A stretch of 64,000 bases of DNA, taken from contig OZ218957.1 in the NCBI GenBank assembly GCA_965112735.1, forward strand, positions 1,550,001 to 1,614,000, in the 5' to 3' direction. This DNA is from Phaeosaccion multiseriatum (taxonomy: Eukaryota; Protista; Ochrophyta, other classes). The position numbers and the translations under genes are program-made. Each line of letters opens with the position of its first letter. Position 1 is the first letter of the stretch. The notes below the pieces were generated by a model, which was not told the origin of the DNA, did not search any database, and was given only the letters and a program-made list of their open reading frames with translations. Positions 14,865 through 64,000 of this stretch are shown piece by piece.

Positions 14865-15222
14865 AGAGCCACTCAAGAGCTGGTGTGCGGTGGATGGGCG
14901 TGAGACCCTCATCTCCTGAGGCGAATTTGTTTTGTTTTGAAGGCCTTTGGGGGGAACTAGAAGACAATCTCTCCACAGCGATCCGCGGGAAGGAATGTGA
15001 GAGAGGAGCCACTCAGAGGAGCTGAGGCTCCCATCATCATACCCTGACATCTTATCCCGTTGATCTGTTGAAGAACTCTCAGAGGAGAAGACCCTCTGCC
15101 TCGCAGCCGGGATCCAAAAATCGTGGACGGGGGAGGGGTGTGAGAAGCATTCGAAGCAGGGAGGACTTCACTTGAGCCTCGGAGCTGTGGTCAAGACGTG
15201 GTTACTGTGGAAGGCTGTGAGA
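14865..15222 (+). repeat. Right arm of an inverted paralogous repeat (partner about 5933-6352): leader plus the first degenerate zinc-finger units
   Basis: cttatcccgttgatctgttgaagaactctcagaggagaagaccctctgcctcgcagccgggatccaaaa closely matches the reverse complement of about 6115-6187. Patchier similarity extends to gagccactcaagagctggtg (14866) versus 6333-6350. Confidence 0.85.
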
Positions 15223-18200
15223 TGTATATTAGAGCTTATGGGCTCAGTATTGGAGCGCTCGAGGTAAGTTGTAACCATATGTAGATGCGTGTATGTGTGG
15301 TATTGATGGAGCGTGAGGTGGAGGGGAAGAGGATGGTAAGGGTGGTAGAGTAGAGGATAATGGGGAATGGGAAGGGAGTGAAGGGGGGAGGAGGAGATGA
15401 AGGGGTGTGGGAAGGAGTGAGGTGGTGGAGGTGATATGTGAACTAGCCTACTGTGGGTGGTGCGGGTGACAAGGCGTGACTAACTGTGGTTGCTATGCTG
15501 TGTGCTGATGGTCTCGCTGTCTGCTGGCTGGTGTACTCCTGCTCCTCAGGCGGCCGCTCCGTCGATGGCTCCCATGAGCCCCCAGTCGAGGGTTTCTGCT
15601 GCTTCGTGCTGCGTCATGGTGGCTCGAAGGAGGGTGCCATACCTGATCTCCCGCTGTGAGAGGGCGCGTTGAAGGGCGAGGGACAGTTGTTGGCGCAGGA
15701 GGCCCTTGATGGGGCCCGTGGCTGCCGCCGCTGCGGGGCCGAGCCCTCTTGATGCCTTGTGGATGGCCATCGCCTCGATGAGCTCGTCCGTTTGGTGGCC
15801 CAGTCTGCCGTACGTCTCGATTGCAATGCACTTCAGGGTTGAAGTCCCGGGCAGAAAACTGCCCAGGTAGTGGGTGCGCTTGCGTTCTTCGGCGGCGGCT
15901 GCTGCGTGGCCTGGCGTGGTGGAGGCCCGTCCCACGTGAGTGGGGGCGGTGGGGTTGGTGACGGTGATGTCGCAGAGGAGGTTTCTCCGCAGGGGTGCGT
16001 CCGCTCCCGGGAAGCTACCTGCGGGATAGGTCAGGTCCATGCGTAGGTCTCGGCCTGCTCGGGTGCCCGTGGGGCCGTCGAAGCAGGTCTGGTCCTCTAC
16101 ACGTGCTCCTCCAATGCCCACGCTGTGCATCATCCTCCCGAAGGCCTTGACGAGGAGGTGGTGTGTGTGGTTGTGGAGGCCGGTGCGGGGGCAGATGGTG
16201 GCGTGGGTAGTGCTTGCCGTGCGGGCGCAGCCTGTGCCAAGGCAGGGTGGGGGCGGGTCCGCGTATGGCGTGTTGACACCGAGGTTGCGACGAAGGGCCA
16301 TGGTCCATTCTGCGGGGGCCATGGTGTTGTGGCCGTGGGGGAGCGCTCCGAGGAAGGCCATGGCGCCCCTTCCTCGCTGTGAGTGGAGTCGGGCTGTTGC
16401 CATTTCCTGTGTCTCCTCTCCCCTCTGTGCCTCTGCCGGTGTGACGTCGATGGTGGCGATGCTCTGCGTCAGCTCCTCATGGCGGCGTTTGTGGATGAAG
16501 GTGGTGAGGGCCTTCTGGACGCCGTGGGTCGGTTGACGGCCTGCCTGATGGCTCCTGCGCACGTTGCGTCGCGCTGTGTCCTGGGCTTGGTGGTCAGGCG
16601 GCTCGAGTACGCGTGAGCGGGCCTCGTCGAACTGTGCCTGACCCACTGCTTGGATGAGGGGGGCCTCAGGGACCCCCTCCTCGTGCAGGAGGTTGACGCT
16701 GTCGGCGACGCTCTTGAGGGCTCCGTTGGTGAACAGCTGGTCCGGTAGGGCGCTCTCTTGGGAGCCTTCCCGGCGTGCGGTGCGGCTGAGCAGGGGGAGG
16801 GTGAGCATCTTGTTGCCAAGGTATGCTGCTGGGGCGATGTCGTGGAGGCTGGTGAGGCCGAGGCCGCCGAAGCGCCGTGCCGTATGCATTTGTAGGCGCT
16901 GTGTCTCCGTCCATGGCTCCTCTTGTGCATCTGCGGCCTGCTCCAGAGGGGGGGCATCGGGGAGTCGCATGATGTGGGCCAGTGTCGCCCTGTTGGTGCG
17001 GTCTGCCCTGCTGCCGAGGGCGCGTCGGAAGATGGAGGGGTCAATGGCTCTCGCCAGGTGTGTGAGCCTGGCTGGGAGGCATTGGAGGAGGACGAGGGTG
17101 GCCGCCTGGGTGTTGTCCCACTCGCTGCAGTGTTTGGCGAGTTGGAGGTAGCCCCTGGGGTCTTCTTGGCCGAGGATGTTGCGGAGGTACTCTTCGATGT
17201 ACTCCTCCGTGCCGACGGGGATGCCGGCTACCACGGTACCCTCGGTGGCAAGTGTGGCGCCCTGCCGTTGGGCGTGGTCCCTGTCAGCCTGTGTTGGCTG
17301 CTTGCCTTTGCCCATGAGGTAAACCGTTTTCCTCTCGTTGAACTCGAGGCCCAAGCCTCGGAATTGGGCTTGGAGATGGGCATGGCGTGGGGCGTAGGTC
17401 TGTAGGGGTGCGTCGGGTTCCAGCTGGTCCATGAGGTCGTCTGCGTAGGCGGAGATGGTGGGGCGGTTCGCTACGGTGTCGGCTGTGTTCTGAACTTTCA
17501 GCACTGGGTGGATGGCGGCTGCGAACATGAGAGGCCCTTCTGGTGCTCCTTGGTTGACTCCGGAGCTCTGGTGGATGGTCTGGGTGCCGTCTGGTGTGAG
17601 GGCGTTGTGGGCGGAGGCGTGGGAGAGGCTGGCGATGGCGTAGTTGATGCCTGCTGGGTCGATGGTAGGGAGTGCTCCTGAGGCTAGGACGCCTCTGGCA
17701 CGCGACACGCGGGTGTAGGCCTTGGTGATGTCATGCAGCACGACGGTTTTGCCGGCATCGTGCGCTAGCTGGGCTGCTGCGGCGTGTGTTTCCCCTCCGC
17801 CTCTGACCGCTACCGCTAGCTGTCCTGCGCTTCTGAGCTCTGGGCCCACCCTGTCCGCGATGAGCTTCATGTGACAGCTCTCCACGAGGCTGCGGTAGAG
17901 GTTGGGGGATGTCACAGGACGCGCTTTCTCGCCGAGGGCTGCGGCGCTGGTGCTGAACCACCGTTTGGCGAGCTGTGGAGGCAGTGGAGTGTCCCCCGTT
18001 CGGAGCAGCTCGTAGGTGTCAGTCAGAGCCTCCACGATTGCGTACTCCTGGGGGCTGTCCGGGGGGTACTTGACGTGGCTCGCCCTGCGCCCGTCTGCTC
18101 CTTGGCCCTTCCAGAAGTTGACCCTCCGGTAGGTCAGCAGCATGGCTGTGCTGATCTCCTCTCTGGTGACGTCGTTGCCATTCTCGGGGTGCTCCTGCAC

Positions 18201-21200
18201 CTGGGTTCTGGCGTACTCCCTGGCTGCTGCTGCTGCTGTGTTGATCTCTTCGAGGCTCTCGTCGACGTGCGCTTGCTGGAGGCGTCTAAAGGTCTCGTGT
18301 GTGGGAGGGAGGTGGCCGTCTCTGCTCTTTGTGCTGAGCCTCGCCGCGGCCTTGTGCAGGCCTCCGGGTTTGGTGAGCAGGTGGGCGCAGGTTTCTCTCC
18401 GTCGCTCCTCTGTCTGTGCCTGTGCTGGGGGTGGTGGGCGGCGTGCGTGTGCTGTGGCTATCGCTGCTTGTGCGAGTGGGGCGATGTCGAGGTCGAGGAC
18501 CATCTGTATCCGCTGCTGGCGGCTGTAGGCTCCGTCTTTAGAGAAGAGCATGGCAGGGAGGAGGTGGTGGAAGACATCCCATGCCAGAAGGGTGTGGAGG
18601 GTGGCGTCGGTGGGGCCGTTCTTGTGGGCCCTCAGCGCCCTGTTCCAGTTGTTGAGCGCTCTTTGCTGTAAGCTGATAATCGAGCTGACGTGGCGGGGGT
18701 TGCACTGCGCTACTGTCTCAAACACGAGTGTTGAGAGGATGGTACCCTGCGGGTCCAGGGCCCCTAGGCGGAGGACGTTTGGGTGCTGCATGGGCCATCC
18801 TTCCTCGGGTGTATCGTCGTTGGCTGGCCCTTCTCCGTCCCCTCCGTCCCCGCCGCTACCTCCTTGGCCTCTGCTCCGTCCTCCTCCCCCTCGTCTCGCT
18901 GCTGCTGCTGTGGTTCCTTGCGTGCGTGTGCTATCTCCCCCTGCCCTTTCTCTCTGAGGTCCCCTCTCTGCTGCTGCTCCTTGTCCGTTTCCTTCCCCCT
19001 CCCTCGTCCTCCTCTTCCTCCTTCTACTCCACTTGGCGCTGCTGCGATTGCTCCTCCTCCTCCTCCTCCTCCTCCTCCTCCTTCCGCGTGCCCTCGCCCT
19101 CCTCCTCTGCCCGTGGGGGTGGTGGGTTGGTACGGGTTGAGCCTGGCCGTTGCTGTCGTGTGCTGGGGCGTTGCCGTACGCGACGGGTCCTCGTTTGGGT
19201 CTGGGCCTAGATAGGCGTTCTCGAGGTCGTTGAGGGGGCCTTGGTAGGCCGATGCTGCGTTGCCTTGGGTGAGGATGGTCCTGAGGGCGGGGATGGCTCG
19301 TTGAGCTTGGTAGCCAGCCATGCAGCCTTGCGCGGGGCAGGGGAGGTTGCCTGGTGGTATGACGGGCTGCTGGTTGGCTCTCCTCAGTGTGGCTTGGTCG
19401 TTCAGGTGGTGAAGGAGGCACGCGGGGTGAACGGTGTGTTGGCAGCGTCGGGTGCGTACTGGCCACTCCGTGGTTGGTGCGATGAAAGGGGGGTCCGCGT
19501 CTGACATGCATATGCAGCATATCGGGGCTGGGGGGGCGGTAGGTTGGGGTGGGGGTGTGTGTCGGGTGGTGGGGGGTGGCTGGGACTGGCGGCGTCGCCC
19601 TTGGCTGGCCTGCGCGTGCTGCTGATGCGACTCTCTGCGCTCCCTCGCTAGGCGATCCCTTGCGCGGCCCATAGCTCTCCCTCCTTGTGCTGTGATGGCC
19701 TGCTCGATCGTGTGCCGGTAGCAGGGGTTGCGGCAGTAGGGGCAGAGGTGGTCGTTGCGGTTGGGGTACCTGCTCATGACTCCCAATGCGCAGTGGTTGT
19801 GCACGTGATGTTCGCCTTCGTGCATGGCGACTTGTGCTTGGCCAGTGAGCGGTTCCATACACACCGGGCAGTTGGGTAGCTCCTCGTTGTTGGTGGGGTC
19901 GCCTCCTCCTTCTCCTTCGTCACCTCCTCCCGCTGCTTGCCCTTCCCCTCCTTCTGCCGCTGCTTCCCGTGCCAGTGCTGGGCGCTCTCCTCCGCCTCTG
20001 CTGTTTTCGCCCTCTTCCCCCCCTGCTACTACTCTTCCTTCGCGGTCTCCTCGTCCCCCTCCCCTGTGTCCCGCTCGCTCTCCTCTCCCTCCTCCCTCCT
20101 GGTCGTGCTCTCGTGTAGTGTCTGTCCCACCTGCTCTTGTCGGTGGGGGCATGCTTCGAGCTCGTTGGATGGTTGGCGGTGCTGGTAGGCTTGCGGCTTC
20201 GTGTGCTCGTATGCAGGCGTTGCATAGGGGTTGTCGTAGGCCTGATTGCGGGAAGCGGGTAAGGAAGGATCTGCCGGAGTTTCGGTGGGCCAGGTTGCCG
20301 CATCCACTTGTGCAGTCCCGGAGCTGGTACGTATTATTCTGTGGTCCGCTCTGTGGGCCGTTGGCGCGGTACCACAGGATTGACGCGGCCTGGGGGTGGT
20401 GTTCGCGCATCCATCGGTCCCACTCTCTGCCGCGGTTCGGGTGGTGGCTCGACTGGTGCCTGATGAGGCGGTCTCTTGTGTTGCCTACCGTGACGAAGGT
20501 GTCGTGGCATTCGCCAAAGTTGCAGAGGATGCCCCCTTGAATGTTTCCATTGTCGGGGTGTCTTCGGTACACTCGGGCGTTGTTGGGGTTGTCCTCCGGT
20601 GTTGGTGGGCTGGGTGTGGTTGCGTCGCTTTGGGCGGGGGGTGGTGGCGGTCCTGGTGCGGTTCCCCGGGGGGCCTGTCTCGTGCGTAGGGCGAGGGCTT
20701 GCCCCGGCGCCCACCACGGTGTGGCCATGGTGTTGGCGAAGGGGGAGGTGGTGGTGTTGTTGGTGTGGTCGCGTAGGGCGTGGCCGTAGCGCTCAACGAT
20801 GGCTTGGACGTCGGGTAATACCGCGATGAGTTCCTCCTGTCGTGAGGCGGTGATGTAGTCGTTGACCAACTCGTTGGAGGTGATCTCTTGGCCTGCGAGC
20901 GTGTGGGCATAGGCCTCCACGATCTGTTGCCATCCAAGGGGGTAATCTCCTCCCCCATGTGGTCTTCCGGGGGTGGTGGGGGGGCCTCCGCTCCTTAGAG
21001 CTTGTCTGAGGAGGGGCATATAGAAGTGCGAGTTGGTAGGCGGGAGCGCCGCGTCGCGCTGGTGGCGTATGGTGTTGCTCCATGTCGTTGGTGCGTGTCC
21101 ATGCGTGTCTGTTTCGAGTGATGCTGTCTCTTCCTCGTGCGTCGTGGGGGGTGGTCGTACGAGGTCGGCGATGGCCTCGGCCGTGTTGTGGTGGGTCAGT

Positions 21201-21943
21201 TCCGTCGCGGTGAGGTTTAGGCTTGCGAACTCAGCGCTGATGCGTCGGCTGGCGGATGCTGGCGCTTGTTCGTTGAAGAAGAGGTTCGGGTGTTGCCGTA
21301 TGGGGGTCGTGGCTGTGAGGTGGGTGTCTTCGTATTCGTCTTGGAGGATGGAGACGATTTGCTCTGTGATCCCGTGTGCGTTTCTGTGAGTTGACGCGTT
21401 GGTGGTTTGGGCTGGATCTGAGGCTCGGAAAGTGGCGGTTGGCCTTTCCGGGCTGCGTGCTCGGGGGGTCCTGCTTCGTCCCCTTGGCCTCGTGGTTGGC
21501 TGCATGGGTGCTGGGCTGGTCGCTGTGGGGGGTGGTGCTGTTGTAGGGCCTGTTGTCTCGCTGGCGGGCGTGGTAGATCTCCTGGCGGCTGGTGCTGTTT
21601 GTTGCCGTGTCGTTGAGATCGGTTGTGGTTGCTGCTGCTGGGGGTGGGCTTCCGCTGCTGTTGCTGTGGGTTCCGTGAGTGCTGGTGGGAGCTGTGGGTC
21701 CTGCGGGAGGGTGTTGCGGGGTGCTGCGGCCGCTGGTGGAGCCGTGATGGGGGTGGGCACGCCTTCCCGTGCTGGTGTTTGGCGAATTGCTGCTGCCGCT
21801 GCCCGTCTCTCCCTTCTTTCGAGCCGCTGCTGATCGCGGCTCATAGGTGGCTCCTGCTGGGTTGCTGTGAGGTTTGCTGGTGTCTCCTGGGCTCCGGGGG
21901 GCCGCGTGGCCCCCCTGTCGTCCCCTTCCATGGTGGCCCTGTC
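15223..21943 (-). mobile_element. Non-LTR retrotransposon copy 1, full length (type A), one homopolymer frameshift near 18995
   Basis: ORFs 18764-21931 and 15546-19862 together reconstitute the protein of copy 3. 5' end is GACAGGGCCACCATG. Confidence 0.95.
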
Positions 21944-21973
21944 TTAAGCAGAAAAAAAAGAAGGGGTGTGAGA

Positions 21974-22356
21974 TGTATATTAGAGCTTATGGGCTCAGTA
22001 TTGGAGCGCTCGAGGTAAGTTGTAACCATATGTAGATGCGTGTATGTGTGGTATTGATGGAGCGGGAGGTGGAGGGGAAGAGGATGGTAAGGGTGGTAGA
22101 GTAGAGGATAATGGGGAATGGGAAGGGAGTGAAGGGGGGAGGAGGAGATGAAGGGGTGTGGGAAGGAGTGAGGTGGTGGAGGTGATATGTGAACTAGCCT
22201 ACTGTGGGTGGTGCGGGTGACAAGGCGTGACTAACTGTGGTTGCTATGCTGTGTGCTGATGGTCTCGCTGTCTGCTGGCTGGTGTACTCCTGCGCCAACA
22301 ACTGTCCCTCGCCCTTCAACGCGCCCTCTCACAGCGGGAGATCAGGTATGGCACCC
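21974..22356 (-). mobile_element. Copy 2: 3' UTR plus an inverted ~68 bp 5' segment
   Basis: 21974-22293 is the 3' UTR. 22289-22356 is the reverse complement of element sequence seen at about 15632-15699. Confidence 0.9.
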
Positions 22357-22368
22357 AGGGGTGTGAGA

Positions 22369-25300
22369 TGTATATTAGAGCTTATGGGCTCAGTATTGGA
22401 GCGCTCGAGGTAAGTTGTAACCATGTGTAGATGCGTGTATGTGTGGTATTGATGGAGCGTGATGTGGAGGGGAAGAGGATGGTAAGGGTGGTAGAGTAGA
22501 GGATAATGGGGAATGGGAAGGGAGTGAGGGGGGGAGGAGGAGATGAAGGGGTGTGGGAAGGAGTGAGGTGGTGGAGGTGATATGTGAACTATCCTACTGT
22601 GGGTGGTGCGGGTGACAAGGCGTGACTAACTGTGGTTGCTATGCTGTGTGCTGATGGTCTCGCTGTCTGCTGGCTGGTGTACTCCTGCTCCTCAGGCGGC
22701 CGCTCCGTCGATGGCTCCCATGAGCCCCCAGTCGAGGGTTTCTGCTGCTTCGTGCTGCGTCATCGTGGCTCGAAGGAGGGTGCCATACCTGATCTCCCGC
22801 TGTGAGAGGGCGCGTTGAAGGGCGAGGGACAGTTGTTGGCGCAGGAGGCCCTTGATGGGGCCCGTGGCTGCCGCCGCTGCGGGGCCGAGCCCTCTTGATG
22901 CCTTGTGGATGGCCATCGCCTCGATGAGCTCGTCCGTTTGGTGGCCCAGTCTGCCGTACGTCTCGATTGCAATGCACTTCAGGGTTGAAGTCCCGGGCAG
23001 AAAACTGCCCAGGTAGTGAATGCGCTTGCGCTCTTCGGCGGCGGCTGCTGCGTGGCCTGGCGTGGTGGAGGCCCGTCCCACGTGGGTGGGGGCGGTGGGG
23101 TTGGTGACGGTGATGTCGCAGAGGAGGTTTCTCCGCAGGGGTGCGTCCGCTCCCGGGAAGCTACCTGCGGGATAGGTCAGATCCATGCGTAGGTCTCGGC
23201 CTGCTCGGGTGCCCGTGGGGCCGTCGAAGCAGGTCTGGTCCTCTACGCGTGCTCCTCCAATGCCCACGCTGTGCATCATCCTCCCGAAGGCCTTGACGAG
23301 GAGGTGGTGTGTGTGGTTGTGGAGGCCGGTGCGGGGGCAGATGGTGGCGTGGGTGGTGCTTGCCGTGCGGGCGCAGCCTGTGCCGAGGCAGGGTGGGGGC
23401 GGGTCCGCGTATGGCGTGTTGACACCGAGGTTGCGACGAAGGGCCATGGTCCATTCTGCGGGGGCCATGGTGTTGTGGCCGTGGGGGAGCGCTCCGAGGA
23501 AGGCCATGGCGCCCCTTCCTCGCTGTGAGTGGAGTCGGGCTGTTGCCATTTCCTGTGTCTCCTCTCCCCTCTGTGCCTCTGCCGGTGTGACGTCGATGGT
23601 GGCGATGCTCTGCGTCAGCTCCTCATGGCGGCGTTTGTGGATGAAGGTGGTGAGGGCCTTCTGGACGCCGTGGGTCGGTTGACGGCCTGCCTGATGGCTC
23701 CTGCGCACGTTGCGTCGCGCTGTGTCTTGGGCTTGGTGGTCAGGCGGCTCGAGTACGCGTGAGCGGGCCTCGTCGAACTGTGCCTGACCCACTGCTTGGA
23801 TGAGGGGGGCCTCAGGGACCCCCTCCTCGTGCAGGAGGTTGACGCTGTCGGCGACGCTCTTGAGGGCTCCGTTGGTGAACAGCTGGTCCGGTAGGGCGCT
23901 CTCTTGGGAGCCTTCCCGGCGTGCGGTGCGGCTGAGCAGGGGGGGGAGGGTGAGCATCTTGTTGCCAAGGTATGCTGCTGGGGCGATGTCATGGAGGCTG
24001 GTGAGGCCGAGGCCGCCGAAGCGCCGTGCCGTATGCATTTGTAGGCGCTGTGTCTCCGTCCATGGCTCCTCTTGTGCATCTGCGGCCTGCTCCAGAGGGG
24101 GGGCATCGGGGAGTCGCATGATGTGGGCCAGTGTCGCCCTGTTGGTGCGGTCTGCCCTGCTGCCGAGGGCGCGTCGGAAGATGGAGGGGTCAATGGCTCT
24201 CGCCAGGTGTGTGAGCCTGGCTGGGAGGCATTGGAGGAGGACGAGGGTGGCCGCCTGGGTGTTGTCCCACTCGCTGCAATGTTTGGCGAGTTGGAGGTAG
24301 CCCCTGGGGTCTTCTTGGCCGAGGATGTTGCGGAGGTACTCTTCGATGTACTCCTCCGTGCCGACGGGGATGCCGGCTACCACGGTGCCCTCGGTGGCTA
24401 GTGTGGCGCCCTGCCGTTGGGCGTGGTCCCTGTCAGCCTGTGTTGGCTGCTTGCCTTTGCCCATGAGGTAAACCGTTTTCCTCTCGTTGAACTCGAGGCC
24501 CAAGCCTCGGAATTGGGCTTGGAGATGGGCATGTCGTGGGGCGTAGGTCTCTAGGGGTGCGTCGGGTTCCAGCTGGTCCATGAGGTCGTCTGCGTAGGCG
24601 GAGATGGTGGGGCGGTTCGCTGCGGTGTCGGCTGTGTTCTGAACTTTCAGCACTGGGTGGATGGCGGCTGCGAACATGAGAGGCCCTTCTGGTGCTCCTT
24701 GGTTGACTCCGGAGCTCTGGTGGATGGTCTGGGTGCCGTCTGGTGTGAGGGCGTTGTGGGCGGAGGCGTGGGAGAGGCTGGCGATGGCGTAGTTGATGCC
24801 TGCTGGGTCGATGGTAGGGAGTGCGCCTGAGGCTAGGACGCCTCTGGCACGCGACACGCGGGTGTAGGCCTTGGTGATGTCATGCAGCACGACGGTTTTG
24901 CCGGCATCGTGCGCTAGCTGGGCTGCTGCGGCGTGTGTTTCCCCTCCGCCTCTGACCGCTACCGCTAGCTGTCCTGCGCTTCTGAGCTCTGGGCCCACCC
25001 TGTCCGCGATGAGCTTCATGTGACACCTCTCCACGAGGCTGCGGTAGAGGTTGGGGGATGTCACAGGACGCGCTTTCTCGCCGAGGGCTGCGGCGCTGGT
25101 GCTGAACCACCGTTTGGCGAGCTGTGGAGGCAGTGGAGTGTCCCCCGTTCGGAGCAGCTCGTAGGTGTCAGTCAGAGCCTCCACGATTGCGTACTCCTGG
25201 GGGCTGTCCGGGGGGTACTTGACGTGGCTCGCCCTGCGCCCGTCTGCTCCTTGGCCCTTCCAGAAGTTGACCCTCCGGTAGGTCAGCAGCATGGCTGTGC

Positions 25301-52162: not shown

Positions 52163-53380
52163 TTGCCGGGAGCGGTGCCTTACAGCGGGCACGACTTTCG
52201 AGTGTGGCAGCTGCACGGATGTTGCTGTTACACGGAAAATGCTGCTGGAGCTTGGTGGGCAGTGGAGATGGAGAATTGCCGGGAGCGGTGCCTTACAGCG
52301 GGCACGGCTTTCGAGTGTGGCAGCAGCACGGATGTTGCTGTTACACGGAAATTGCTGCTGGAGCTTGGTGGGCCGTGGAGATAGAGAATTGCCGGGAGCA
52401 GTGCCTCACAGCGGGCACGGCTTTCGAGTGTGGCAGCAGCACGGATGTTGCTGTTGCACGGAAATTGCTGCTGGAGCTTGGTGGGCCGTGGAGATAGAGA
52501 ATTGCCGGGAGTGGTGCCTTAGACAGCGGGCATGGCTTTCGAGTGTGGCAGCAGCACGGATGTTGCTGTGGCACGGAAATTGCTGCTGGAGCTTGGTGGG
52601 CGGAGGAGACAGAGAACTGCCGGGAGTGGTGCCTTAGACAGCGGGCATGGCTTTCGAGTGTGGCAGCAGCACGGATGTTGCTGTTACACGGAAATTGCTG
52701 CTGGAGCTTGGTGGGCCGTGGAGATAGAGAATTGCCGGGAGCAGTGCCTCACAGCGGGCACGGCTTTCGAGTGTGGCAGCAGCACGGATGTTGCTGTTGC
52801 ACGGAAATTGCTGCTGGAGCTTGGTGGGCCGTGGAGATAGAGAATTGCCGGGAGTGGTGCCTTAGACAGCGGGCATGGCTTTCGAGTGTGGCAGCAGCAC
52901 GGATGTTGCTGTGGCACGGAAATTGCTGCTGGAGCTTGGTGGGCGGAGGAGACAGAGAACTGCCGGGAGTGGTGCCTTAGACAGCGGGCATGGCTTTCGA
53001 GTGTGGCAGCAGCACGGATGTTGCTGTTACACGGAAATTGCTGCTGGAGCTTGGTGGGCCGTGGAGATAGAGAATTGCCGGGAGTGGTGCCTTAGACAGC
53101 GGGCATGGCTTTCGAGTGTGGCAGCTGCACGGATGTTGCTGTTACACGGAAATTGCTGCTGGAGCTTGGTGGGCCGTGGAGACAGAGAACTGCCGGGAGT
53201 GGCGCCTTAGACAGCGGGCATGGCTTTCGAGTGTGGCAGCAGCACGGATGTTGCTGTTGCACGGAAATTGCTGCTGGAGCTTGGTGGGCCGTGGAGACAG
53301 AGAATTGCCGAGAGCGGTGCCCTACAGCGGGCACGGCTTTCGAGTGTGGCAGCAGCGCGGCTGTTGCTGTTGCACGGAGT
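52163..53380 (+). repeat. 113-115 bp minisatellite, about 11 units, in the second element B unit
   Basis: Same unit at higher copy number, with a 343-bp higher-order duplication (compare ORF ends 52637 and 52980). Confidence 0.92.
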
Positions 53381-56237
53381 TTGGCGGGAGACAGAGAAGG
53401 ATACTCGCAAGGCTGCTTTAGGGACTGTCTGGGTGCCTTGTAGGCACACCAGTAAACACTTGAGCAGTCAGCATTAGTGGTGCGCAACGAGGCTTTGGCA
53501 ACGCTGGTGGCGAGTAGGAGTGGAGATAGAGAATTGCGCGGGTGAGTTTGAGTCATGGGATGTTCTCATCCGTGAGCCTGTGTGGGTGAGTTTGAGTCGT
53601 GGGGTTTTCTCACCAATACAGGAGGGTGTGTGTTGGAGGAGCGGTCGCACACACCTGGGTGAGTTTTGCATATTTCTCATCCGTTTTTATTGGAAGCAAC
53701 ATGGAGGCTTTTGCTACAAGTCGAGCTTTAGTAGGCGAACCCGCTTTGAGTTGCGTGGGGACACGCAATAGTTTAGTTCAGGGGGGTGTTTGAAGTGCAG
53801 GGATGGCTGACGGGGATGTTGAAAGTCAGTATTATGTCAATGGCACAGGCCCAGGCAAATACGGTGAGAAACGGTGCGTGGCCCGTTTCTCACTCACCTC
53901 CCAGCAGGTTGGTCGTTTAGGATGGCTCACGGATAAAGCTAATAGAGACAAGGCTGGCTGCCAGGCTGGCTTTGGGGTTGCTATTACCTTGTCCATGCGG
54001 CTACTCCTATCCTAGGTGGAGAGCAACGTGACTCTTTACAGACTTGTGCTTGGCCAGTGAGCGGTTCCATACACACCGGGCAGTTGGGTAGCTCCTCGTT
54101 GTTGGTGGGGTCGCCTCCTCCTTCTGCTTCGTCACCTCCTCCCTCTGCTTGCCCTTCCCCTCCTTCTGCCGCTGCTTCCCGTGCCAGTGCTGGGCGCTCT
54201 CCTCCGCCTCTGCTGTTTTCGCCCTCTCCCCCCCCTGCTACTACTCTTCCGTCGCGGTCTCCTCGTCCCCCTCCCCTGTGTCCCGCTCGCTCTCCTCTCC
54301 CTTCTCCCTCCGGGTCGTGCTCCCGTGTAGTGTCTGTCCCACCTGCTCTTGTCGGTGGGGGCATGCTGCGAGCTCGTGGTGGGATGGTTGACGATGCCGG
54401 GAGGTGTGCTGCTTCGTATGCTCGTATGCATGTGTGGCATATGGGCTGCCGTAGGCCTGCTTGCGGGAAGCTTCTGAGGAGGGATCTGCCGGAGTTTCTG
54501 TGGGCCAGGTTGCCGCATCCACGTATACAGTCACGTAGCTGATACGTTCTGTTCTGTGGTCCGCTCTGTGGGCCGTTGGCGCGGTACCACAGGATTGACG
54601 CGGCCTGGGGGTGGTGTTCGCGCATCCATCGTTCCCACTCTCGGCCGCGGTTGGGGTGGTGGCTCAACTGGTGCCTGTTGAGGCGGTCTCTGGACCTGCC
54701 GACCGTGACGAAGGTGTCATTGCACTGTTCGAAGTTGCAGAGGACTCCCGTGGCGATGTAGTTGTTGTCAATGTTCCTGCGGTACGCTGTGGTGTTGTTG
54801 TGGGTGTCGTCCGTCTGTGGCGTGGTTGTGTCGCTTTGGGTGGGGGTGTTGGCGGTCCTGGTGCGGTTCCCCGGGGGGCCTGCCTCGTGCGTAAGGCGAG
54901 GGCTTGCCCCGGCGCCCACCACGGTGTGGCCATGGTGTTGGCGAAGGGGGAGGTGGTGGTGTTGTTGGTGTGGTCGCGTAGGGCGTGGCCGTAGCGCTCA
55001 ACGATGGCTTGGACGTCGGGTAATACCGCGATGAGTTCCTCCTGTCGTGAGGCGGTGATGTAGTCGTTGACCAACTCGTTGGAGGTGATCTCTTGGCCTG
55101 CGAGCGTGTGGGCATAGGCCTCTACGATCTGTTGCCATCCAAGGGGGTAATCTCCTCCCCCATGTGGTCTTCCGGGGGTGGTGGGGGGGCCTCCGCTCCT
55201 TAGAGCTTGTCTGAGGAGGGGCATATAGAAGTGCGAGTTGGTAGGCGGGAGCGCCGCGTCGCGCTGGTGGCGTATGGTGTTGCTCCATGTCGTTGGTGCG
55301 TGTCCATGCGTGTCTGTTTCGAGTGATGCTGTCTCTTCCTCGTGCGTCGTGGGGGGTGGTCGTACGAGGTCGGCGATGGCCTCGGCCGTGTTGTGGTGGG
55401 TCAGTTCCGTCGCGGTGAGGTTTAGGCTTGCGAACTCAGCGCTGATGCGTCGGCTGGCGGATGCTGGCGCTTGTTCGTTGAAGAAGAGGTTCGGGTGTTG
55501 CCGTATGGGGGTCGTGGCTGTGAGGTGGGTGTCTTCGTATTCGTCTTGGAGGATGGAGACGATTTGCTCTGTGATCCCGTGTGCGTTTCTGTGAGTTGAC
55601 GCGTTGGTGGTTTGGGCTGGATCTGAGGCTCGGAAAGTGGCGGTTGGCCTTTCCGGGCTGCGTGCTCGGGGGGTCCTGCTTCGTCCCCTTGGCCTCGTGG
55701 TTGGCTGCATGGGTGCTGGGCTGGTCGCTGTGGGGGGTGGTGCTGTTGTAGGGCCTGTTGTCTCGCTGGCGGGCGTGGTAGATCTCCTGGCGGCTGGTGC
55801 TGTTTGTTGCCGTGTCGTTGAGATCGGTTGTGGTTGCTGCTGCTGGGGGTGGGCTTCCGCTGCTGTTGCTGTGGGTTCCGTGAGTGCTGGTGGGAGCTGT
55901 GGGTCCTGCGGGAGGGTGTTGCGGGGTGCTGCGGCCGCTGGTGGAGCCGTGATGGGGGTGGGCACGCCTTCCCGTGCTGGTGTTTGGCGAATTGCTGCTG
56001 CCGCTGCCCGTCTCTCCCTTCTTTCGAGCCGCTGCTGATCGCGGCTCATAGGTGGCTCCTGCTGGGTTGCTGTGAGGTTTGCTGGTGTCTCCTGGGCTCC
56101 GGGGGGCCGCGTGGCCCCCCTGTCGTCCCCTTCCATGGTGGCCCTGTCCGAGGGGTGTGAGAAGAAGCAGGTCCAAGGAGGATTGTGCACTAGGCACGGA
56201 GCTGTGGTCAAGAGGTGTATTGTGGAGGGGTGTGAGA

Positions 56238-56289
56238 TGTATATTAGAGCTTATGGGCTCAGTATTGGAGCGCTCGAGGTAAGTTGTAA
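56238..56289 (-). mobile_element. Copy 10, 52-bp 3'-terminal stub
   Basis: tgtatattagagc...gtaagttgtaa between two target units (56149-56237 and 56290-56366). Confidence 0.85.
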
Positions 56290-56367
56290 GATGTATCGGG
56301 TCCAAGGAAGGTTGTGCACTAGGCATGGAGCTGTGGTCAAGACTTGTACTGTGGAGGGGTGTGAGAA

Positions 56368-59300
56368 GTATATTAGAGCTTATGGGCTCAGTATTGGAGC
56401 GCTCGAGGTAAGTTGTAACCATGTGTAGATGTGTGTATGTGTGGTATTGATGGAGCGTGATGTGGAGGAGAAGAGGATGGTAAGGGTGGTAGAGTAGAGG
56501 ATAATGGGGAATGGGAAGGGAGTGAAGGGGGGAGGAGGAGATGAAGGGGTGTGGGAAGGAGTGAGGTGGTGGAGGTGATAGGTGAACTATCCTGCTGTGG
56601 GTGGTGCGGGTGACAAGGCGTGACTAACTGTGGTTGCTATGCTGTGTGCTGATGGTCTCGCTGTCTGCTGGCTGGTGTACTCCTGCTCCTCAGGCGGCCG
56701 CTCCGTCGATGGCTCCCATGAGCCCCCAGTCGAGGGTTTCTGCTGCTTCGTGCTGCGTCATCGTGGCTCGAAGGAGGGTGCCATACCTGATCTCCCGCTG
56801 TGAGAGGGCGCGTTGAAGGGCGAGGGACAGTTGTTGGCGCAGGAGGCCCTTGATGGGGCCCGTGGCTGCCGCCGCTGCGGGGCCGAGCCCTCTTGATGCC
56901 TTGTGGATGGCCATCGCCTCGATGAGCTCGTCCGTTTGGTGGCCCAGTCTGCCGTACGTCTCAATTGCAATGCACTTCAGGGTTGAAGTCCCGGGCAGAA
57001 AACTGCCCAGGTAGTGTGTGCGCTTGCGTTCTTCGGCGGCGGCTGCTGCGTGGCCTGGCGTGGTGGAGGCCCGTCCCACGTGGGTGGGGGCGGTGGGGTT
57101 GGTGACGGTGATGTCGCAGAGGAGGTTTCTCCGCAGGGGTGCGTCCGCTCCCGGGAAGCTACCTGCGGGATAGGTCAGGTCCATGCGTAGGTCTCGTCCT
57201 GCTCGGGTGCCCGTGGGGCCGTCGAAGCAGGTCTGGTCCTCTACACGTGCTCCTCCAATGCCCACGCTGTGCATCATCCTCCCGAAGGCCTTGACGAGGA
57301 GGTGGTGCGTGTGGTTGTGGAGGCCGGTGCGGGGGCAGATGGTGGCGTGGGTGGTGCTTGCCGTGCGGGCGCAGCCTGTGCCAAGGCAGGGTGGGGGCGG
57401 GTCCGCGTATGGCGTGTTGACACCGAGGTTGCGACGAAGGGCCATGGTCCATTCTGCGGGGGCCATGGTGTTGTGGCCGTGGGGGAGCGCTCCGAGGAAG
57501 GCCATGGCGCCCCTTCCTCGCTGTGAGTGGAGTCGGGCTGTTGCAATTTCCTGTGTCTCCTCTCCCCTCTGTGCCTCTGCCGGTGTGACGTCGATGGTGG
57601 CGATGCTCTGCGTCAGCTCCTCATGGCGGCGTTTGTGGATGAAGGTGGTGAGGGCCTTCTGGACGCCGTGGGTCGGTTGACGGCCTGCCTGATGGCTCCT
57701 GCGCACGTTGCGTCGCGCTGTGTCTTGGGCTTGGTGGTCAGGCGGCTCGAGTACGCGTGAGCGGGCCTCGTCGAACTGTGCCTGACCCACTGCTTGGATG
57801 AGGGGGGCCTCAGGGACCCCCTCCTCGTGCAGGAGGTTGACGCTGTCGGCGACGCTCTTGAGGGCTCCGTTGGTGAACAGCTGGTCCGGTAGGGCGCTCT
57901 CTTGGGAGCCGTCCCGGCGTGCGGTGCGGCTGAGCAGGGGGGGGAGGGTGAGCATCTTGTTGCCAAGGTATGCTGCTGGGGCGATGTCGTGGAGGCTGGT
58001 GAGGCCGAGGCCGCCGAAGCGCCGTGCCGTATGCATTTGTAGGCGCTGTGTCTCCGTCCATGGCTCCTCTTGTGCATCTGCGGCCTGCTCCAGAGGGGGG
58101 GCATCGGGGAGGCGCATGATGTGGGCCAGTGTCGCCCTGTTGGTGCGGTCTGCCCTGCTGCCGAGGGCGCGTCGGAAGATGGAGGGGTCAATGGCTCTCG
58201 CCAGGTGTGTGAGCCTGGCTGGGAGGCATTGGAGGAGGACGAGGGTGGCCGCCTGGGTGTTGTCCCACTCGCTGCAGTGTTTGGCGAGTTGGAGGTAGCC
58301 CCTGGGGTCTTCTTGGCCGAGGATGTTGCGGAGGTACTCTTCGATGTACTCCTCCGTGCCGACGGGGATGCCGGCTACCACGGTACCCTCGGTGGCAAGT
58401 GTGGCGCCCTGCCGTTGGGCGTGGTCCCTGTCAGCCTGTGTTGGCTGCTTGCCTTTGCCCATGAGGTAAACCGTTTTCCTCTCGTTGAACTCGAGGCCCA
58501 AGCCTCGGAATTGGGCTTGGAGATGGGCATGGCGTGGGGCGTAGGTCTCTAGGGGTGCGTCGGGTTCCAGCTGGTCCATGAGGTCGTCTGCGTAGGCGGA
58601 GATGGTGGGGCGGTTCGCTGCGGTGTCGGCTGTGTTCTGAACTTTCAGCACTGGGTGGATGGCGGCTGCGAACATGAGAGGCCCTTCTGGTGCTCCTTGG
58701 TTGACTCCGGAGCTCTGGTGGATGGTCTGGGTGCCGTCTGGTGTGAGGGCGTTGTGGGCGGAGGCGTGGGAGAGGCTGGCGATGGCGTAGTTGATGCCTG
58801 CTGGGTCGATGGTAGGGAGTGCGCCTGAGGCAAGGACGCCTCTGGCACGCGACACGCGGGTGTAGGCCTTGGTGATGTCATGCAGCACGACGGTTTTGCC
58901 GGCATCGTGCGCTAGCTGGGCTGCTGCGGCGTGTGTTTCCCCTCCGCCTCTGACCGCTACCGCTAGCTGTCCTGCGCTTCTGAGCTCTAGGCCCACCCTG
59001 TCCGCGATGAGCTTCATGTGACAGCTCTCCACGAGGCTGCGGTAGAGGTTGGGGGATGTCACAGGACGCGCTTTCTCGCCGAGGGCTGCGGCGCTGGTGC
59101 TGAACCACCGTTTGGCGAGCTGTGGAGGCAGTGGAGTGTCCCCCGTTCGGAGCAGCTCGTAGGTGTCAGTCAGAGCCTCCACGATTGCGTACTCCTGGGG
59201 GCTGTCCGGGGGTACTTGACGTGGCTCGCCCTGCGCCCGTCTGCTCCTTGGCCCTTCCAGTAGTTGACCCTCCGGTAGGTCAGCAGCATGGCTGTGCTGA

Positions 59301-62300
59301 TCTCCTCTCTGGTGACGTCGTTGCCATTCTCGGGGTGCTCCTGCACCTGGGTTCTGGCGTACTCCCTGGCTGCTGTTGCTGCTGTGTTGATCTCTTCGAG
59401 GCTCTCGTCGACGTGCGCTTGCTGGAGGCGTCGAAAGGTCTCGTGTGTGGGAGGGAGGTGGCCGTCTCTGCTCTTTGTGCTGAGCCTCGCCGCGGCCTTG
59501 TGCAGGCCTCCGGGTTTGGTGAGCAGGTGGGCGCAGGTTTCTCTCCGTCGCTCCTCTGTCTGTGCCTGTGCTGGGGGTGGTGGGCGGCGTGCGTGTGCTG
59601 TGGCTATCGCTGCTTGTGCGAGTGGGGCGATGTCGAGGTCGAGGACCATCTGTATCCGCTGCTGGCGGCTGTAGGCTCCGTCTTTAGAGAAGAGCATGGC
59701 AGGGAGGAGGTGGTGGAAGACATCCCATGCCAGAAGGGTGTGGAGGGTGGCGTCGGTGGGTCCGTTCTTGTGGGCCCTCAGCGCCCTGTTCCAGTTGTTG
59801 AGCGCTCTTTGCTGTAAGCTGATAATCAAGCTTACGTGGCGGGGGTTGCACTGCGCTACTGTCTCAAACACGAGTGTTGAGAGGATGGTACCCTGCGGGT
59901 CCAGGGCCCCTAGGCGGAGGACGTTTGGGTGCTGCATGGGCCATCCTTCCTCGGGTGTATCGTCGTTGGCTGGCCCTTCTCCGTCCCCTCCGTCCCCGCC
60001 GCTACCTCCTTGGCCTCTGCTCCGTCCTCCTCCCCCTCGTCTCGCTGCTGCTGCTGTGGTTCCTTGCGTGCGTGTGCTATCTCCCCCTGCCCTTTCTCTC
60101 TGAGGTCCCCTCTCTGCTGCTGCTCCTTGTCCGTTTCCTTCCCCCCTCCCTCGTCCTCCTCTTCGTCCTTCTACTCCACTTGGCGCTGCTGCGATTGCTC
60201 CTCCTCCTCCTCCTCCTCCTTCCGCGTGCCCTCGCCCTCCTCCTCTGCCCGTGGGGGTGGTGGGTTGGTACGGGTTGAGCCTGGCCGTTGCTGTCGTGTG
60301 CTGGGGCGTTGCCGTACGCGACGGGTCCTCGTTTGGGTCTGGGCCTAGATAGGCGTTCTCGAGGTCGTTGAGGGGGCCTTGGTAGGCCGATGCTGCGTTG
60401 CCTTGGGTGAGGATGGTCCTGAGGGCGGGGATGGCTCGTTGAGCTTGGTAGCCAGCCATGCAGCCTTGCGCGGGGCAGGGGAGGTTGCCTGGTGGTATGA
60501 CGGGCTGCTGGTTGGCTCTCCTCAGTGTGGCTTGGTCGTTCAGGTGGTGAAGGAGGCACGCGGGGTGAACGGTGTGTTGGCAGCGTCGGGTGCGTACTGG
60601 CCACTCCGTGGTTGGTGCGATGAAAGGGGGGTCCGCGTCAGACATGCATATGCAGCATATCGGGGCTGGGGGGGCGGTAGGTTGGGGTGGGGGTGTGTGT
60701 CGGGTGGTGGGGGGTGGCTGGGACTGGCGGCGCCGTCCTTGGCTGGCCTGCGCGTGCTGCTGATGCGACTCTCTGCGCTCCCTCGCTAGGCGATCCCTTG
60801 CGCGGCCCATAGCTCTCCCTCCTTGTGCTGTGATGGCCTGCTCGATCGTGTGCCGGTAGCAGGGGTTGCGGCAGTAGGGGCAGAGGTGGTCGTTGCGGTT
60901 GGGGTACGTGCTCATGACTCCCAATGCGCAGTGGTTGTGCACGTGATGTTCGTCTTCGTGCATGGCGACTTGTGCTTGGCCAGTGAGCGGTTCCATACAC
61001 ACCGGGCAGTTGGGTAGCTCCTCGTTGTTGGTGGGGTCGCCTCCTCCTTCTGCTTCGTCACCTCCTCCCTCTGCTTGCCCTTCCCCTCCTTCTGCCGCTG
61101 CTTCCCGTGCCAGTGCTGGGCGCTCTCCTCCGCCTCTGCTGTTTTCGCCCTCTCCCCCCCCTGCTACTACTCTTCCGTCGCGGTCTCCTCGTCCCCCTCC
61201 CCTGTGTCCCGCTCGCTCTCCTCTCCCTTCTCCCTCCGGGTCGTGCTCCCGTGTAGTGTCTGTCCCACCTGCTCTTGTCGGTGGGGGCATGCTGCGAGCT
61301 CGTGGTGGGATGGTTGACGATGCCGGGAGGTGTGCTGCTTCGTATGCTCGTATGCATGTGTGGCATATGGGCTGCCGTAGGCCTGCTTGCGGGAAGCTTC
61401 TGAGGAGGGATCTGCCGGAGTTTCTGTGGGCCAGGTTGCCGCATCCACGTATACAGTCACGTAGCTGATACGTTCTGTTCTGTGGTCCGCTCTGTGGGCC
61501 GTTGGCGCGGTACCACAGGATTGACGCGGCCTGGGGGTGGTGTTCGCGCATCCATCGTTCCCACTCTCGGCCGCGGTTGGGGTGGTGGCTCAACTGGTGC
61601 CTGTTGAGGCGGTCTCTGGACCTGCCGACCGTGACGAAGGTGTCATTGCACTGTTCGAAGTTGCAGAGGACTCCCGTGGCGATGTAGTTGTTGTCAATGT
61701 TCCTGCGGTACGCTGTGGTGTTGTTGTGGGTGTCGTCCGTCTGTGGCGTGGTTGTGTCACTGTGGGTGGGGGTGTTGGCGGTCCTGGTGCGGTTCCCCGG
61801 GGGGCCTGCCTCGTGCGTAAGGCGAGGGCTTGCCCCGGCGCCCACCACGGTGTGGCCATGGTGTTGGCGAAGGGGGAGGTGGTGGTGTTGTTGGTGTGGT
61901 CGCGTAGGGCGTGGCCGTAGCGCTCAACGATGGCTTGGACGTCGGGTAATACCGCGATGAGTTCCTCCTGTCGTGAGGCGGTGATGTAGTCGTTGACCAA
62001 CTCGTTGGAGGTGATCTCTTGGCCTGCGAGCGTGTGGGCATAGGCCTCTACGATCTGTTGCCATCCAAGGGGGTAATCTCCTCCCCCATGTGGTCTTCCG
62101 GGGGTGGTGGGGGGGCCTCCGCTCCTTAGAGCTTGTCTGAGGAGGGGCATATAGAAGTGCGAGTTGGTAGGCGGGAGCGCCGCGTCGCGCTGGTGGCGTA
62201 TGGTGTTGCTCCATGTCGTTGGTGCGTGTCCATGCGTGTCTGTTTCGAGTGATGCTGTCTCTTCCTCGTGCGTCGTGGGGGGTGGTCGTACGAGGTCGGC

Positions 62301-62644
62301 GATGGCCTCGGCCGTGTTGTGGTGGGTCAGTTCCGTCGCGGTGAGGTTTAGGCTTGCGAACTCAGCGCTGATGCGTCGGCTGGCGGATGCTGGCGCTTGT
62401 TCGTTGAAGAAGAGGTTCGGGTGTTGCCGTATGGGGGTCGTGGCTGTGAGGTGGGTGTCTTCGTATTCGTCTTGGAGGATGGAGACGATTTGCTCTGTGA
62501 TCCCGTGTGCGTTTCTGTGAGTTGACGCGTTGGTGGTTTGGGCTGGATCTGAGGCTCGGAAAGTGGCGGTTGGCCTTTCCGGGCTGCGTGCTCGGGGGGT
62601 CCTGCTTCGTCCCCTTGGCCTCGTGGTTGGCTGCATGGGTGCTG
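56368..62644 (-). mobile_element. Copy 11, near full length, 5'-truncated (~6.3 kb; type B)
   Basis: ORFs 56690-59182, 59170-61848 and 61590-62675; followed by target unit 62643-62722. Confidence 0.95.
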
Positions 62645-62722
62645 AGAAGAAGCAGGTCCAAGGAGGATTGTGCACTAGGCACGGAGCTGTGAGAAAGACG
62701 TGTACTGTGGAGGGGTGTGAGA

Positions 62723-64000
62723 TGTATATTAGAGCTTATGGGCTCAGTATTGGAGCGCTCGAGGTAAGTTGTAACCATGTGTAGATGCGTGTATGTGTGG
62801 TATTGATGGAGCGTGAGGTGGAGGGGAAGAGGATGGTAAGGGTGGTAGAGTAGAGGATAATGGGGAATGGGAAGGGAGTGAAGGGGGGAGGAGGAGATGA
62901 AGGGGTGTGGGAAGGAGTGAGGTGGTGGAGGTGATATGTGAACTAGCCTACTGTGGGTGGTGCGGGTGACAAGGCGTGACTAACTGTGGTTGCTATGCTG
63001 TGTGCTGATGGTCTCGCTGTCTGCTGGCTGGTGTACTCCTGCTCCTCAGGCGGCCGCTCCGTCGATGGCTCCCATGAGCCCCCAGTCGAGGGTTTCTGCT
63101 GCTTCGTGCTGCGTCATGGTGGCTCGAAGGAGGGTGCCATACCTGATCTCCCGCTGTGAGAGGGCGCGTTGAAGGGCGAGGGACAGTTGTTGGCGCAGGA
63201 GGCCCTTGATGGGGCCCGTGGCTGCCGCCGCTGCGGGGCCGAGCCCTCTTGATGCCTTGTGGATGGCCATCGCCTCGATGAGCTCGTCCGTTTGGTGGCC
63301 CAGTCTGCCGTACGTCTCGATTGCAATGCACTTCAGGGTTGAAGTCCCGGGCAGAAAACTGCCCAGGTAAACTGCCCAGGTAGTGGGTGCGCTTGCGTTC
63401 TTCGGCGGCGGCTGCTGCGTGGCCTGGCGTGGTGGAGGCCCGTCCCACGTGAGTGGGGGCGGTGGGGTTGGTGACGGTGATGTCGCAGAGGAGGTTTCTC
63501 CGCAGGGGTGCGTCCGCTCCCGGGAAGCTACCTGCGGGATAGGTCAGGTCCATGCGTAGGTCTCGGCCTGCTCGGGTGCCCGTGGGGCCGTCGAAGCAGG
63601 TCTGGTCCTCTACACGTGCTCCTCCAATGCCCACGCTGTGCATCATCCTCCCGAAGGCCTTGACGAGGAGGTGGTGTGTGTGGTTGTGGAGGCCGGTGCG
63701 GGGGCAGATGGTGGCGTGGGTAGTGCTTGCCGTGCGGGCGCAGCCTGTGCCAAGGCAGGGTGGGGGCGGGTCCGCGTATGGCGTGTTGACACCGAGGTTG
63801 CGACGAAGGGCCATGGTCCATTCTGCGGGGGCCATGGTGTTGTGGCCGTGGGGGAGCGCTCCGAGGAAGGCCATGGCGCCCCTTCCTCGCTGTGAGTGGA
63901 GTCGGGCTGTTGCCATTTCCTGTGTCTCCTCTCCCCTCTGTGCCTCTGCCGGTGTGACGTCGATGGTGGCGATGCTCTGCGTCAGCTCCTCATGGCGGCG
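62723..64000 (-). mobile_element. Copy 12, continues beyond the window; a 13-bp duplication disrupts the endonuclease frame
   Basis: 3' UTR plus the endonuclease region; aaactgcccaggt occurs twice at 63356-63381. Confidence 0.93.

Follow-up and report, generated by a model that had tools for sequence, protein, structure and literature searches.

Sequence-specific retrotransposons without long terminal repeats (non-LTR retrotransposons) that carry a restriction-like endonuclease (RLE) are thought to survive by means of targets that are multicopy and mostly noncoding or RNA genes. The targets listed for sequence-specific non-LTR elements in the reviews by Kojima are genes for rRNA, tRNA, and small nuclear RNA (snRNA), spliced-leader exons, microsatellites, telomeric repeats, and transposons, with no protein-coding sequence among them (PMC4640811, PMC5035012). 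In Trypanosoma, the RHS multigene family is a coding-region hot spot for the elements ingi and RIME, with pseudogenes making up over half of its members (PMC7563717). The RLE element Utopia occurs in stramenopiles (oomycetes) (PMC4640811). Here, we describe an element found in a 64,000-nucleotide (nt) stretch of the Phaeosaccion multiseriatum genome (C8:1550001-1614000 in an assembly of 67 Mb and 22 contigs), which is referred to below as the window. Its junctions and its protein make it very probable that this element is an RLE-type non-LTR retrotransposon that inserts antisense at one exact base of the codons of a zinc finger repeat, Zf_WRKY19.

The 3′ junction and the zinc finger coding repeat

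The 3′ terminus of the element, GCTCTAATATACA, was found 14 times in the window with at most one mismatch (0.00 expected from shuffled sequence), 12 times on the minus strand (15223 to 62735) and twice on the plus strand (5514 and 5920). An earlier note on this stretch had claimed that all 12 right-hand copies and both left-hand copies are attached at one point. This claim was borne out: all 14 ends were joined to the target at the same base, as TGTGAGA followed directly by TGTATATT, and the junction-spanning 15-mer TGTGAGATGTATATT was found at the same 14 places, the sole variant being TGTGAGAAGTATATT at 56360-56374. Across the genome, we found 117 element 3′ ends, which provided 71 distinct readable junction contexts. 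The flanks were not unrelated sequences, as 58 of the 71 contexts had no more than two mismatches to the 11-nt core TCTCRCACCCC.

On other contigs, the flanks varied at wobble positions (e.g., TCTCGCA, TGTCGCA, and TTTCACA), and the element end was constant. On contig C1, the flanks TCTCGCA, TGTCGCA, TATCGCA, and TGTTACA preceded CCCCTCAACAGTACA with an unchanged element end, and CCCCTCAACAG came next after the first three of these. On C13, the flank was TTTCACACCCCTCGACAGAACA (TTTCACACCCCTCGACAG), again with the same element end. The variable flank positions 2, 5, and 14 correspond to the third positions of Glu/Asp, Cys, and Val codons, respectively. Insertions lie antisense within the codons for Cys-Thr-Val-Glu-Gly-Cys-Glu/Asp-Lys of the Zf_WRKY19 repeat, and on the sense strand of the gene GA(G/C)A lies on one side of the join and AG on the other.

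Empty and filled target sites were counted with a strict pattern, TGTNGAGGGGTGYGANAAG, either alone or joined to TGTATATT, with the reversed pattern serving as a control. Genome-wide, 268 sites were empty and 55 were filled (0 for both with the control), which corresponds to an occupancy of approximately 17%, or about one in six strict-consensus sites. Because so many strict sites are empty, and because flanks diverge beside an invariant element end, the repeat is a target, and it occurs independently of the element as well. The resemblance to the WRKY19-like repeat suggested earlier was confirmed by Pfam: PF24906 (Zf_WRKY19; curated cutoff, 27 bits) matched the repeat units at E values of 1e-20 to 1e-45, with scores of 71 to 152 bits for four array open reading frames (ORFs) and 28.5 bits for the single intact unit of the window. 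The genome search revealed at least 909 candidate units of Zf_WRKY19, spread over 11 contigs and often placed in long open frames distant from element copies. All 150 scored genomic matches exceeded the cutoff, in open frames of 79 to 1125 amino acids (aa), and the arrays occupy open frames of 200 to 1100 aa. A protein atlas search with one array gene gave no usable match.

The repeat is under coding constraint, as judged from codon entropies across 87 distinct unit sequences, calculated for the codons left free by the search pattern. A Val codon was kept in 86 of the 87 units, with entropies of 0.09, 0, and 1.05 at codon positions 1, 2, and 3, respectively. A Leu codon was kept in 85 units (0.80, 0, and 0.84), with synonymous changes at its first position. 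The array genes on C1 have a common start, MRKRCTVEGC, and contain three to seven or more units each, and the element is located after a different unit (the third to the seventh) in different gene copies. Empty units adjoin filled ones. At one locus (L017), a 350-bp insert has units to its left and right that keep a common reading frame.

Two further readings of these junctions were set aside. The unit variant GAGATGTATCGGG (at 38339 and 56290) resembles the junction plus 5 nt of the element and could be taken for an in-frame footprint; a natural variant, GACAAGTATCGGG (Asp-Lys-Tyr-Arg), occurs on C1, and a single A-to-T change suffices to account for it. Splicing of the antisense insert out of the host mRNA was also considered; the possible GT...AG pair would leave 22 to 23 extra nt, out of frame.

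Copies in the window and the encoded protein

The features of the window are listed below, with truncation points in the numbering of copy 3, which served as the reference in a BLAST comparison with the window.

5422-5526 and 5538-5932, plus: left-hand 3′ fragments of the element, with 11 nt of target between them
5933-6110, minus: degenerate zinc finger units of the left-hand paralogue, head to head with the right-hand gene
15101-15222, plus: degenerate first units of the right-hand zinc finger pseudogene; Cys and His codons lost, frame shifted
15223-21962, minus: copy 1, full length, with the 5′ leader TTCTTTTTTTTCTGCTTAAGACAGGGCCACCATGG; ORF broken into two frames (1438 and 1055 aa)
21963-21973, plus: 11-nt target remnant GGGGTGTGAGA, the sole separator of copies 1 and 2, which lie head to tail
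21974-22356, minus: copy 2, a 320-bp 3′ fragment (21974-22293) followed by an inverted element piece (about 22287-22356), i.e., a 5′ inversion
22294-22368: spacer after the copy 2 fragment, consisting of the inverted copy 2 piece and duplicated target
22369-29088, minus: copy 3, complete except for about 18 nt of the 5′ leader; no other copy in the window has a fully open ORF
22369-22691, minus: 3′ untranslated region (UTR) of copy 3, ending in the terminus given above, without poly(A)
22692-29075, minus: ORF of copy 3, 2127 aa, stop codon included in the coordinates
23013-23390, minus: CCHC motif and predicted PD-(D/E)xK-type RLE, ORF residues about 1896-2021 (conserved columns, predicted fold)
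24462-24992, minus: reverse transcriptase (RT) core, ORF residues 1362-1538 (RVT_1, E value of 7.8e-7; profile search)
26538-27017, minus: two RING-like motifs in the N-terminal half of the copy 3 ORF (zf-RING_2, E value of 1.4e-5, below the Pfam cutoff)
29089-29197, plus: target separating copy 3 from copy 4, with 28 nt of duplicated sequence and then an 81-bp unit; includes the only intact unit in the window
29198-32510, minus: copy 4, 5′ truncated at reference position 3458
32511-32586, plus: zinc finger unit (KQRVQGGLCTRHGAVVKRCTVEGCE)
32587-32759, minus: copy 5, a 173-bp 3′ fragment
32760-32832, plus: zinc finger unit
32833-37851, minus: copy 6, truncated at reference position 1753
37852-37859, plus: 8 nt of target, CTGTGAGA, the sole separator of copies 6 and 7
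37860-38338, minus: copy 7, a 481-bp 3′ fragment
38339-38420, plus: zinc finger unit
38421-43041, minus: copy 8, truncated at reference position 2144
43042-43128, plus: zinc finger unit and 12-nt target-site duplication
43129-56149, minus: copy 9, full length, split by a nested 6.3-kb element into parts 43129-47733 and 54041-56149
47734-54040, no strand assigned: unrelated nested transposon in copy 9, flanked by an 8-bp duplication, GACTTGTG
56150-56237, plus: zinc finger unit and 13-nt target-site duplication
56238-56289, minus: copy 10, a 52-bp 3′ fragment
56290-56367, plus: zinc finger unit, with the variant junction TGTGAGAA joined to GTATATT of the next copy
56368-62644, minus: copy 11, truncated at reference position 484; ORF broken
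62645-62722, plus: zinc finger unit
62723-64000, minus: copy 12, which runs past the end of the window

One array is thus seen to be filled almost unit by unit, and it extends beyond the window, with further 3′ ends at C8:1617513 and C8:1620945. The spacers had been described as differing from one another and keeping one reading frame. This held for eight whole units of 73 to 109 bp, which were mutually different and read ...K(Q/K)xxQGGLCxxHGAVVK(R/T)CTVEGCE; the description failed for three spacers without a whole unit (21963-21973, 37852-37859, and 22294-22368). The only uninterrupted unit left in the window is at 29095-29154. Both target genes of the window are already degenerate (i.e., pseudogenes) and stand head to head, with starts near 6100 and near 15100, and the first units of both have lost Cys and His codons; these genes were probably dead before insertion. 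The two degenerate paralogues (5933-6110, minus, and 15101-15222, plus) lie approximately 9 kb apart and were invaded from their first units onward. The 6.3-kb insert nested in copy 9 contains long arrays of a repeat of approximately 130 bp and a 425-aa ORF (48212-49489, minus) for which Pfam gave no convincing match. This insert is probably a DNA transposon.

The element is approximately 6.74 kb long and ends in ...AATATACA without poly(A). Its copies in the window are 97.6 to 99.4% identical, have a single common 3′ end, and lack LTRs, and their 5′ ends lie at reference positions 44/50 (full length), 484, 1753, 2144, 3458, 6292, 6378, 6453, 6602, and 6668. The element thus combines the traits of non-LTR retrotransposons, namely, an invariant 3′ end, truncation of the 5′ end to differing extents, the lack of terminal repeats, and a flanking target duplication. 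Copy 3, which the earlier note had taken to be intact, does contain an open ORF of 2127 aa. In a Pfam scan, this ORF matched RVT_1 alone (E value of 7.8e-7), with a score of 29.4 bits, just below the cutoff of 29.6 bits. A profile built from 15 relatives matched the RTs of L1 ORF2p and R2 at E values of 2e-14 to 4e-12, and the QG and DD columns of the RT were invariant in the alignment of relatives.

C-terminal to the RT, C667, H694, D736, and D758 were invariant in the alignment (A1), and C672, H680, C684, and E716 were nearly so. The nuclease motifs in the alignment comprise CCHC, a His, a Glu, the Asp of RMD, and the Asp of LDVTV, with the K and Y of K..HY also conserved. An AlphaFold model of the C-terminal 298 aa had a mean predicted local distance difference test (pLDDT) value of 90.4. 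When this model was compared with the PDB using Foldseek, the top seven matches were all R2 proteins (probability of 1.0; template modeling [TM] scores of 0.41 to 0.48; 215 to 277 aligned columns), followed by other PD-(D/E)xK folds, i.e., cap-snatching endonucleases and the endonuclease-like domain of Prp8. The CCHC, D, D, and K columns together with the fold search support the RLE assignment made in the earlier note. No Pfam match to an apurinic/apyrimidinic endonuclease (APE)-type domain (Exo_endo_phos) or to a Myb domain was obtained with the whole ORF or its pieces. The N-terminal 1200 aa contain a C2H2-like motif and a Cys cluster, both upstream of two weak RING-like fingers. Such fingers (26538-27017, minus) are unusual in a non-LTR retrotransposon protein. 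Together, these data support the view of the element as a non-LTR retrotransposon with an RT, a CCHC motif, and a predicted C-terminal RLE.

Several observations concern the age of the element. No stop codon was present in 45 of the 51 scored RT-RLE matches of the genome, and 2 of those 45 had full-length open frames (2172 aa in copy 3 and 2132 aa at C8:1546726). When copy 3 was compared with copies 1, 6, and 11, the ratios of nonsynonymous to synonymous substitution rates (dN/dS) were 0.09 to 0.23, with few changes. The element is young; subfamilies at 85 to 95% protein identity are also present in the genome. The dN/dS values of copies 8 and 9 (0.73 to 0.81) were discarded as unusable because these copies (38747-41296 in copy 8 and 43455-46145 in copy 9, both minus) have approximately 99% DNA identity to copy 3 and 93 to 94% protein identity without stops, which suggests that a stretch between two compensating frameshifts is read in another frame.

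The element was also present in the contigs of a second sample of the organism. In that sample (run X5), 286 bp of the 3′ UTR (window 29236-29523) are missing from an abundant form of the element, which has a contig depth of approximately 3600; this form was absent from run X1. We dismissed the apparent occurrence of the element in other species (runs X6 and X7), as it consisted of a few near-identical short contigs with a depth of 2 to 12 that look like carry-over of the same organism.

Proposed insertion mechanism and alternative explanations

At 31 full-length 5′ ends, the upstream target ...CTTCTCRCAC was followed by variable filler (ACCC, CCCACACCC, CCCTAGCACCCCCC, or ACCCCA) and then by TTCTTTTTTT(T)CTGCTTAAGACAGGGCCACCATGG. 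Target duplications in the window ranged from none (two truncated copies, with 1 to 5 nt lost) to 13 nt. Copy 3 has 16 nt more target beyond its 12-nt duplication, and another locus (L008) is similar. An off-target copy on C12 (L069 and L082) shows a clean 11-bp duplication, TGTCGATATCA. Because this copy still carries the filler CACCCCTAGCACCCCCC, which is common to three on-target copies on C1, some target-like sequence appears to travel with the 5′ end of the RNA. In 8 of the 71 contexts, a second copy starts no more than 36 nt from the junction, which suggests that the site beside a resident copy can be reused. The primer end set by the 3′ join is ...GGGGTGTGAGA-3′, on the sense strand of the zinc finger gene.

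On this basis, we propose that the protein recognizes roughly 5′-TGTACTGTKGAGGGGTGYGASA^AG-3′ and tolerates wobble changes. The sense strand would be nicked at the position marked ^, and the freed 3′-OH would prime reverse transcription from the 3′ end of the element RNA. A cut in the second strand approximately 11 to 13 nt away would generate the duplication TCTCRCACCCC(TC), and imprecise 5′ joining would account for the truncations, the filler, and the one inversion. Read in this way, 5′ truncation, filler, and inversion are what target-primed reverse transcription usually produces when cuts are staggered and the 5′ end is joined imperfectly. The 5′ end of the RNA appears to bear target-like CACCCC. 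The duplicated target retained next to each copy would be open to repeat attack, and neighboring units would provide further sites. The resulting head-to-tail pile-up could turn a 1-kb coding array into tens of kilobases of element.

Some points weigh against this interpretation. Approximately 13 of the 71 junction contexts misfit the target (e.g., L076, L079/L080, L083, L091, and L092), and some of them have only TCTC or TGTC in common with it. Target specificity is therefore strong, not absolute, with a few dispersed copies off target. The link between the nuclease and R2 is absent from sequence comparison alone and comes from motifs and the predicted fold; nick positions and cleavage order are deduced from the junctions, and the final structure is compatible with entry of a second copy on either side, upstream or downstream, of the resident one. 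The 5′ UTR is only approximately 35 nt long, with no promoter found and no ribozyme detected by Rfam at E values up to 1 in 21900-29300. No RNA run was found on record for the organism, and the four sequencing runs compared with the window consisted of assembled contigs, in which insertion polymorphism is invisible.

Were the 75-bp repeat itself part of the element, as a 3′ tail or a carried repeat, the fixed junction would merely be internal to the element. The window taken by itself could give that impression, with nearly every unit attached to a copy and a single uninterrupted unit left. The 268 empty strict sites refute this, and we consider it next to impossible: at least 909 candidate units occur on 11 contigs, many in long open frames far from copies; flanks differ between loci and the element end does not; inserts are bracketed by units that keep a common reading frame; and off-target copies lack the repeat. 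A single ancient insertion in one unit could instead have spread as the gene cluster underwent unequal crossing-over, gene conversion, and segmental duplication, with no sequence-specific nuclease involved. Some loci do have this appearance, since L018 to L023 on C1 repeat the same two junctions at a spacing of approximately 4.1 kb and L079 and L080 have one off-target flank in common. As a general explanation, however, duplication is extremely unlikely. In the window alone, at least 11 different 5′ truncation points lie behind the same 3′ junction, and each 5′ junction has its own duplication or deletion; elsewhere, insertions follow the third to the seventh unit in different gene copies and occur in diverged subfamilies on C1, C2, C8, C11, and C13.

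The nature of the arrays raises another issue. If they belonged to another mobile element, e.g., a Crypton-like tyrosine-recombinase transposon, the target would be a transposon and thus of a known class (as for Tx1L in Tx1D). At L017/L031, an array is in frame with a C-terminal tyrosine-recombinase-like domain (LRASEL, HSFRVGGAT, GRWKS, and FMRYIR; Phage_integrase E value of 0.0085), and array genes are numerous, young, and clustered, with common flanking sequence. A further Pfam match of the arrays is to CxC6, a cysteine cluster that accompanies KDZ transposases; this match, however, overlaps the same Cys-rich repeat and may reflect composition only. There are approximately 7 close copies of the recombinase domain compared with hundreds of array units, other array genes have unrelated C-terminal parts that lack a recombinase (L049), and neither terminal repeats nor duplications of a carrier element came to light. 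We therefore regard a transposon origin of the target as unlikely and favor insertion into host coding repeats. The fusion of array and recombinase was observed at L017 (166-1257, minus; G000:C1:640970-642058) and at L032 to L039, with distant copies at 33 to 37% identity, and may represent a Crypton-like element or a domesticated recombinase.

Comparison with described elements

The insertion of this element into zinc finger codons would widen the known target range of sequence-specific RLE retrotransposons to repeated protein-domain codons. With approximately 17% of strict sites occupied and whole arrays destroyed, it offers a natural case for weighing the gain of an element against the loss of host genes. 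It also adds a new, well-defined specificity of approximately 20 bp to the R2-like proteins that are under development for targeted DNA insertion. For genome annotation, it is relevant that such insertions explain the swelling of some zinc finger gene clusters to tens of kilobases. KRAB zinc finger genes act against mobile DNA in animals. By analogy, the arrays, whose frame is fixed and which have a few hypervariable positions, might be modular nucleic-acid binders in host defense against mobile DNA, and homing of the element a counterattack that disables the defenders, an idea that we rate as very unlikely.

Like R2, the element has one ORF that encodes N-terminal zinc-binding modules, an RT, a CCHC motif, and, at the C terminus, a PD-(D/E)xK nuclease, whose predicted fold is closest to that of R2. 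The resemblance extends to a 3′ junction that is exact to the base, 5′ junctions that vary, 5′ truncation, the lack of poly(A), and a multicopy tandem target. However, R2 is specific for 28S rDNA in animals, whereas the on-target copies of the present element all lie in the codons of a protein-coding repeat, Zf_WRKY19. The present element differs further from R2 in its duplication of 11 to 13 bp and in its protein, which is approximately twice as long (2127 aa), with a 1200-aa N-terminal part that carries RING-like fingers. It has no Myb match in Pfam and no match to a hepatitis delta virus (HDV)-like ribozyme in Rfam, and its RT is too dissimilar from that of R2 to be detected in pairwise comparison.

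CRE1, CRE2, SLACS, CZAR, NeSL-1, and Utopia are early-branching RLE elements that also occur in protists, and each is tied, like the present element, to one site in a small multicopy gene. Their targets, unlike the one described here, are RNA genes (spliced-leader or U2 snRNA). An exhaustive library search identified 884 relatives at E values up to 0.001, of which the best had 33% identity over the whole RT-RLE region. No zinc finger motif was found in any frame of the contigs of three relatives (L093 to L095), on which the element ends are not sharply delimited. On the closest of them, a metagenome contig (L093, 33% protein identity), an end reading AAGCTGTCATAAATACA is followed by a C run at approximately 4300-4370, and a second similar end is again followed by a C run. 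This end resembles the present terminus, AAGCTCTAATATACA, and hints at a different, perhaps homopolymeric, target.

As a protein-coding multigene family repeatedly hit by non-LTR elements at one coding hot spot, the RHS family of Trypanosoma is similar to the Zf_WRKY19 arrays. The elements involved there, ingi and RIME, are APE-type and have one site per gene, whereas the present RLE element has one site per 75-bp intragenic unit, so that one zinc finger gene can take many copies. Both ingi and RIME are widespread outside RHS genes too. Tx1L is also APE-type, and its target lies inside another repeated genetic element; the Tx1D and telomere-repeat targets are noncoding. Tx1L in Tx1D of Xenopus and the elements MoTeR, Cnl1, and FoTeR in telomere repeats (targets listed in PMC4640811) appear to resemble the present element in being site-specific non-LTR elements that form head-to-tail arrays in a repeated target.

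The earlier note had proposed that a tandem protein-domain repeat is a new class of target for RLE elements, unless the family had already been described with this target. In our literature search, we found no RLE element with a protein-coding repeat for its target, nor any description of the present family. The proposal also agrees with the lists by Kojima, and the APE-type elements of the trypanosome RHS genes are the nearest precedent, as a coding multigene hot spot. Compared with these systems, the mechanism of the present element is of a known kind, and its target is of a new kind for the RLE class.

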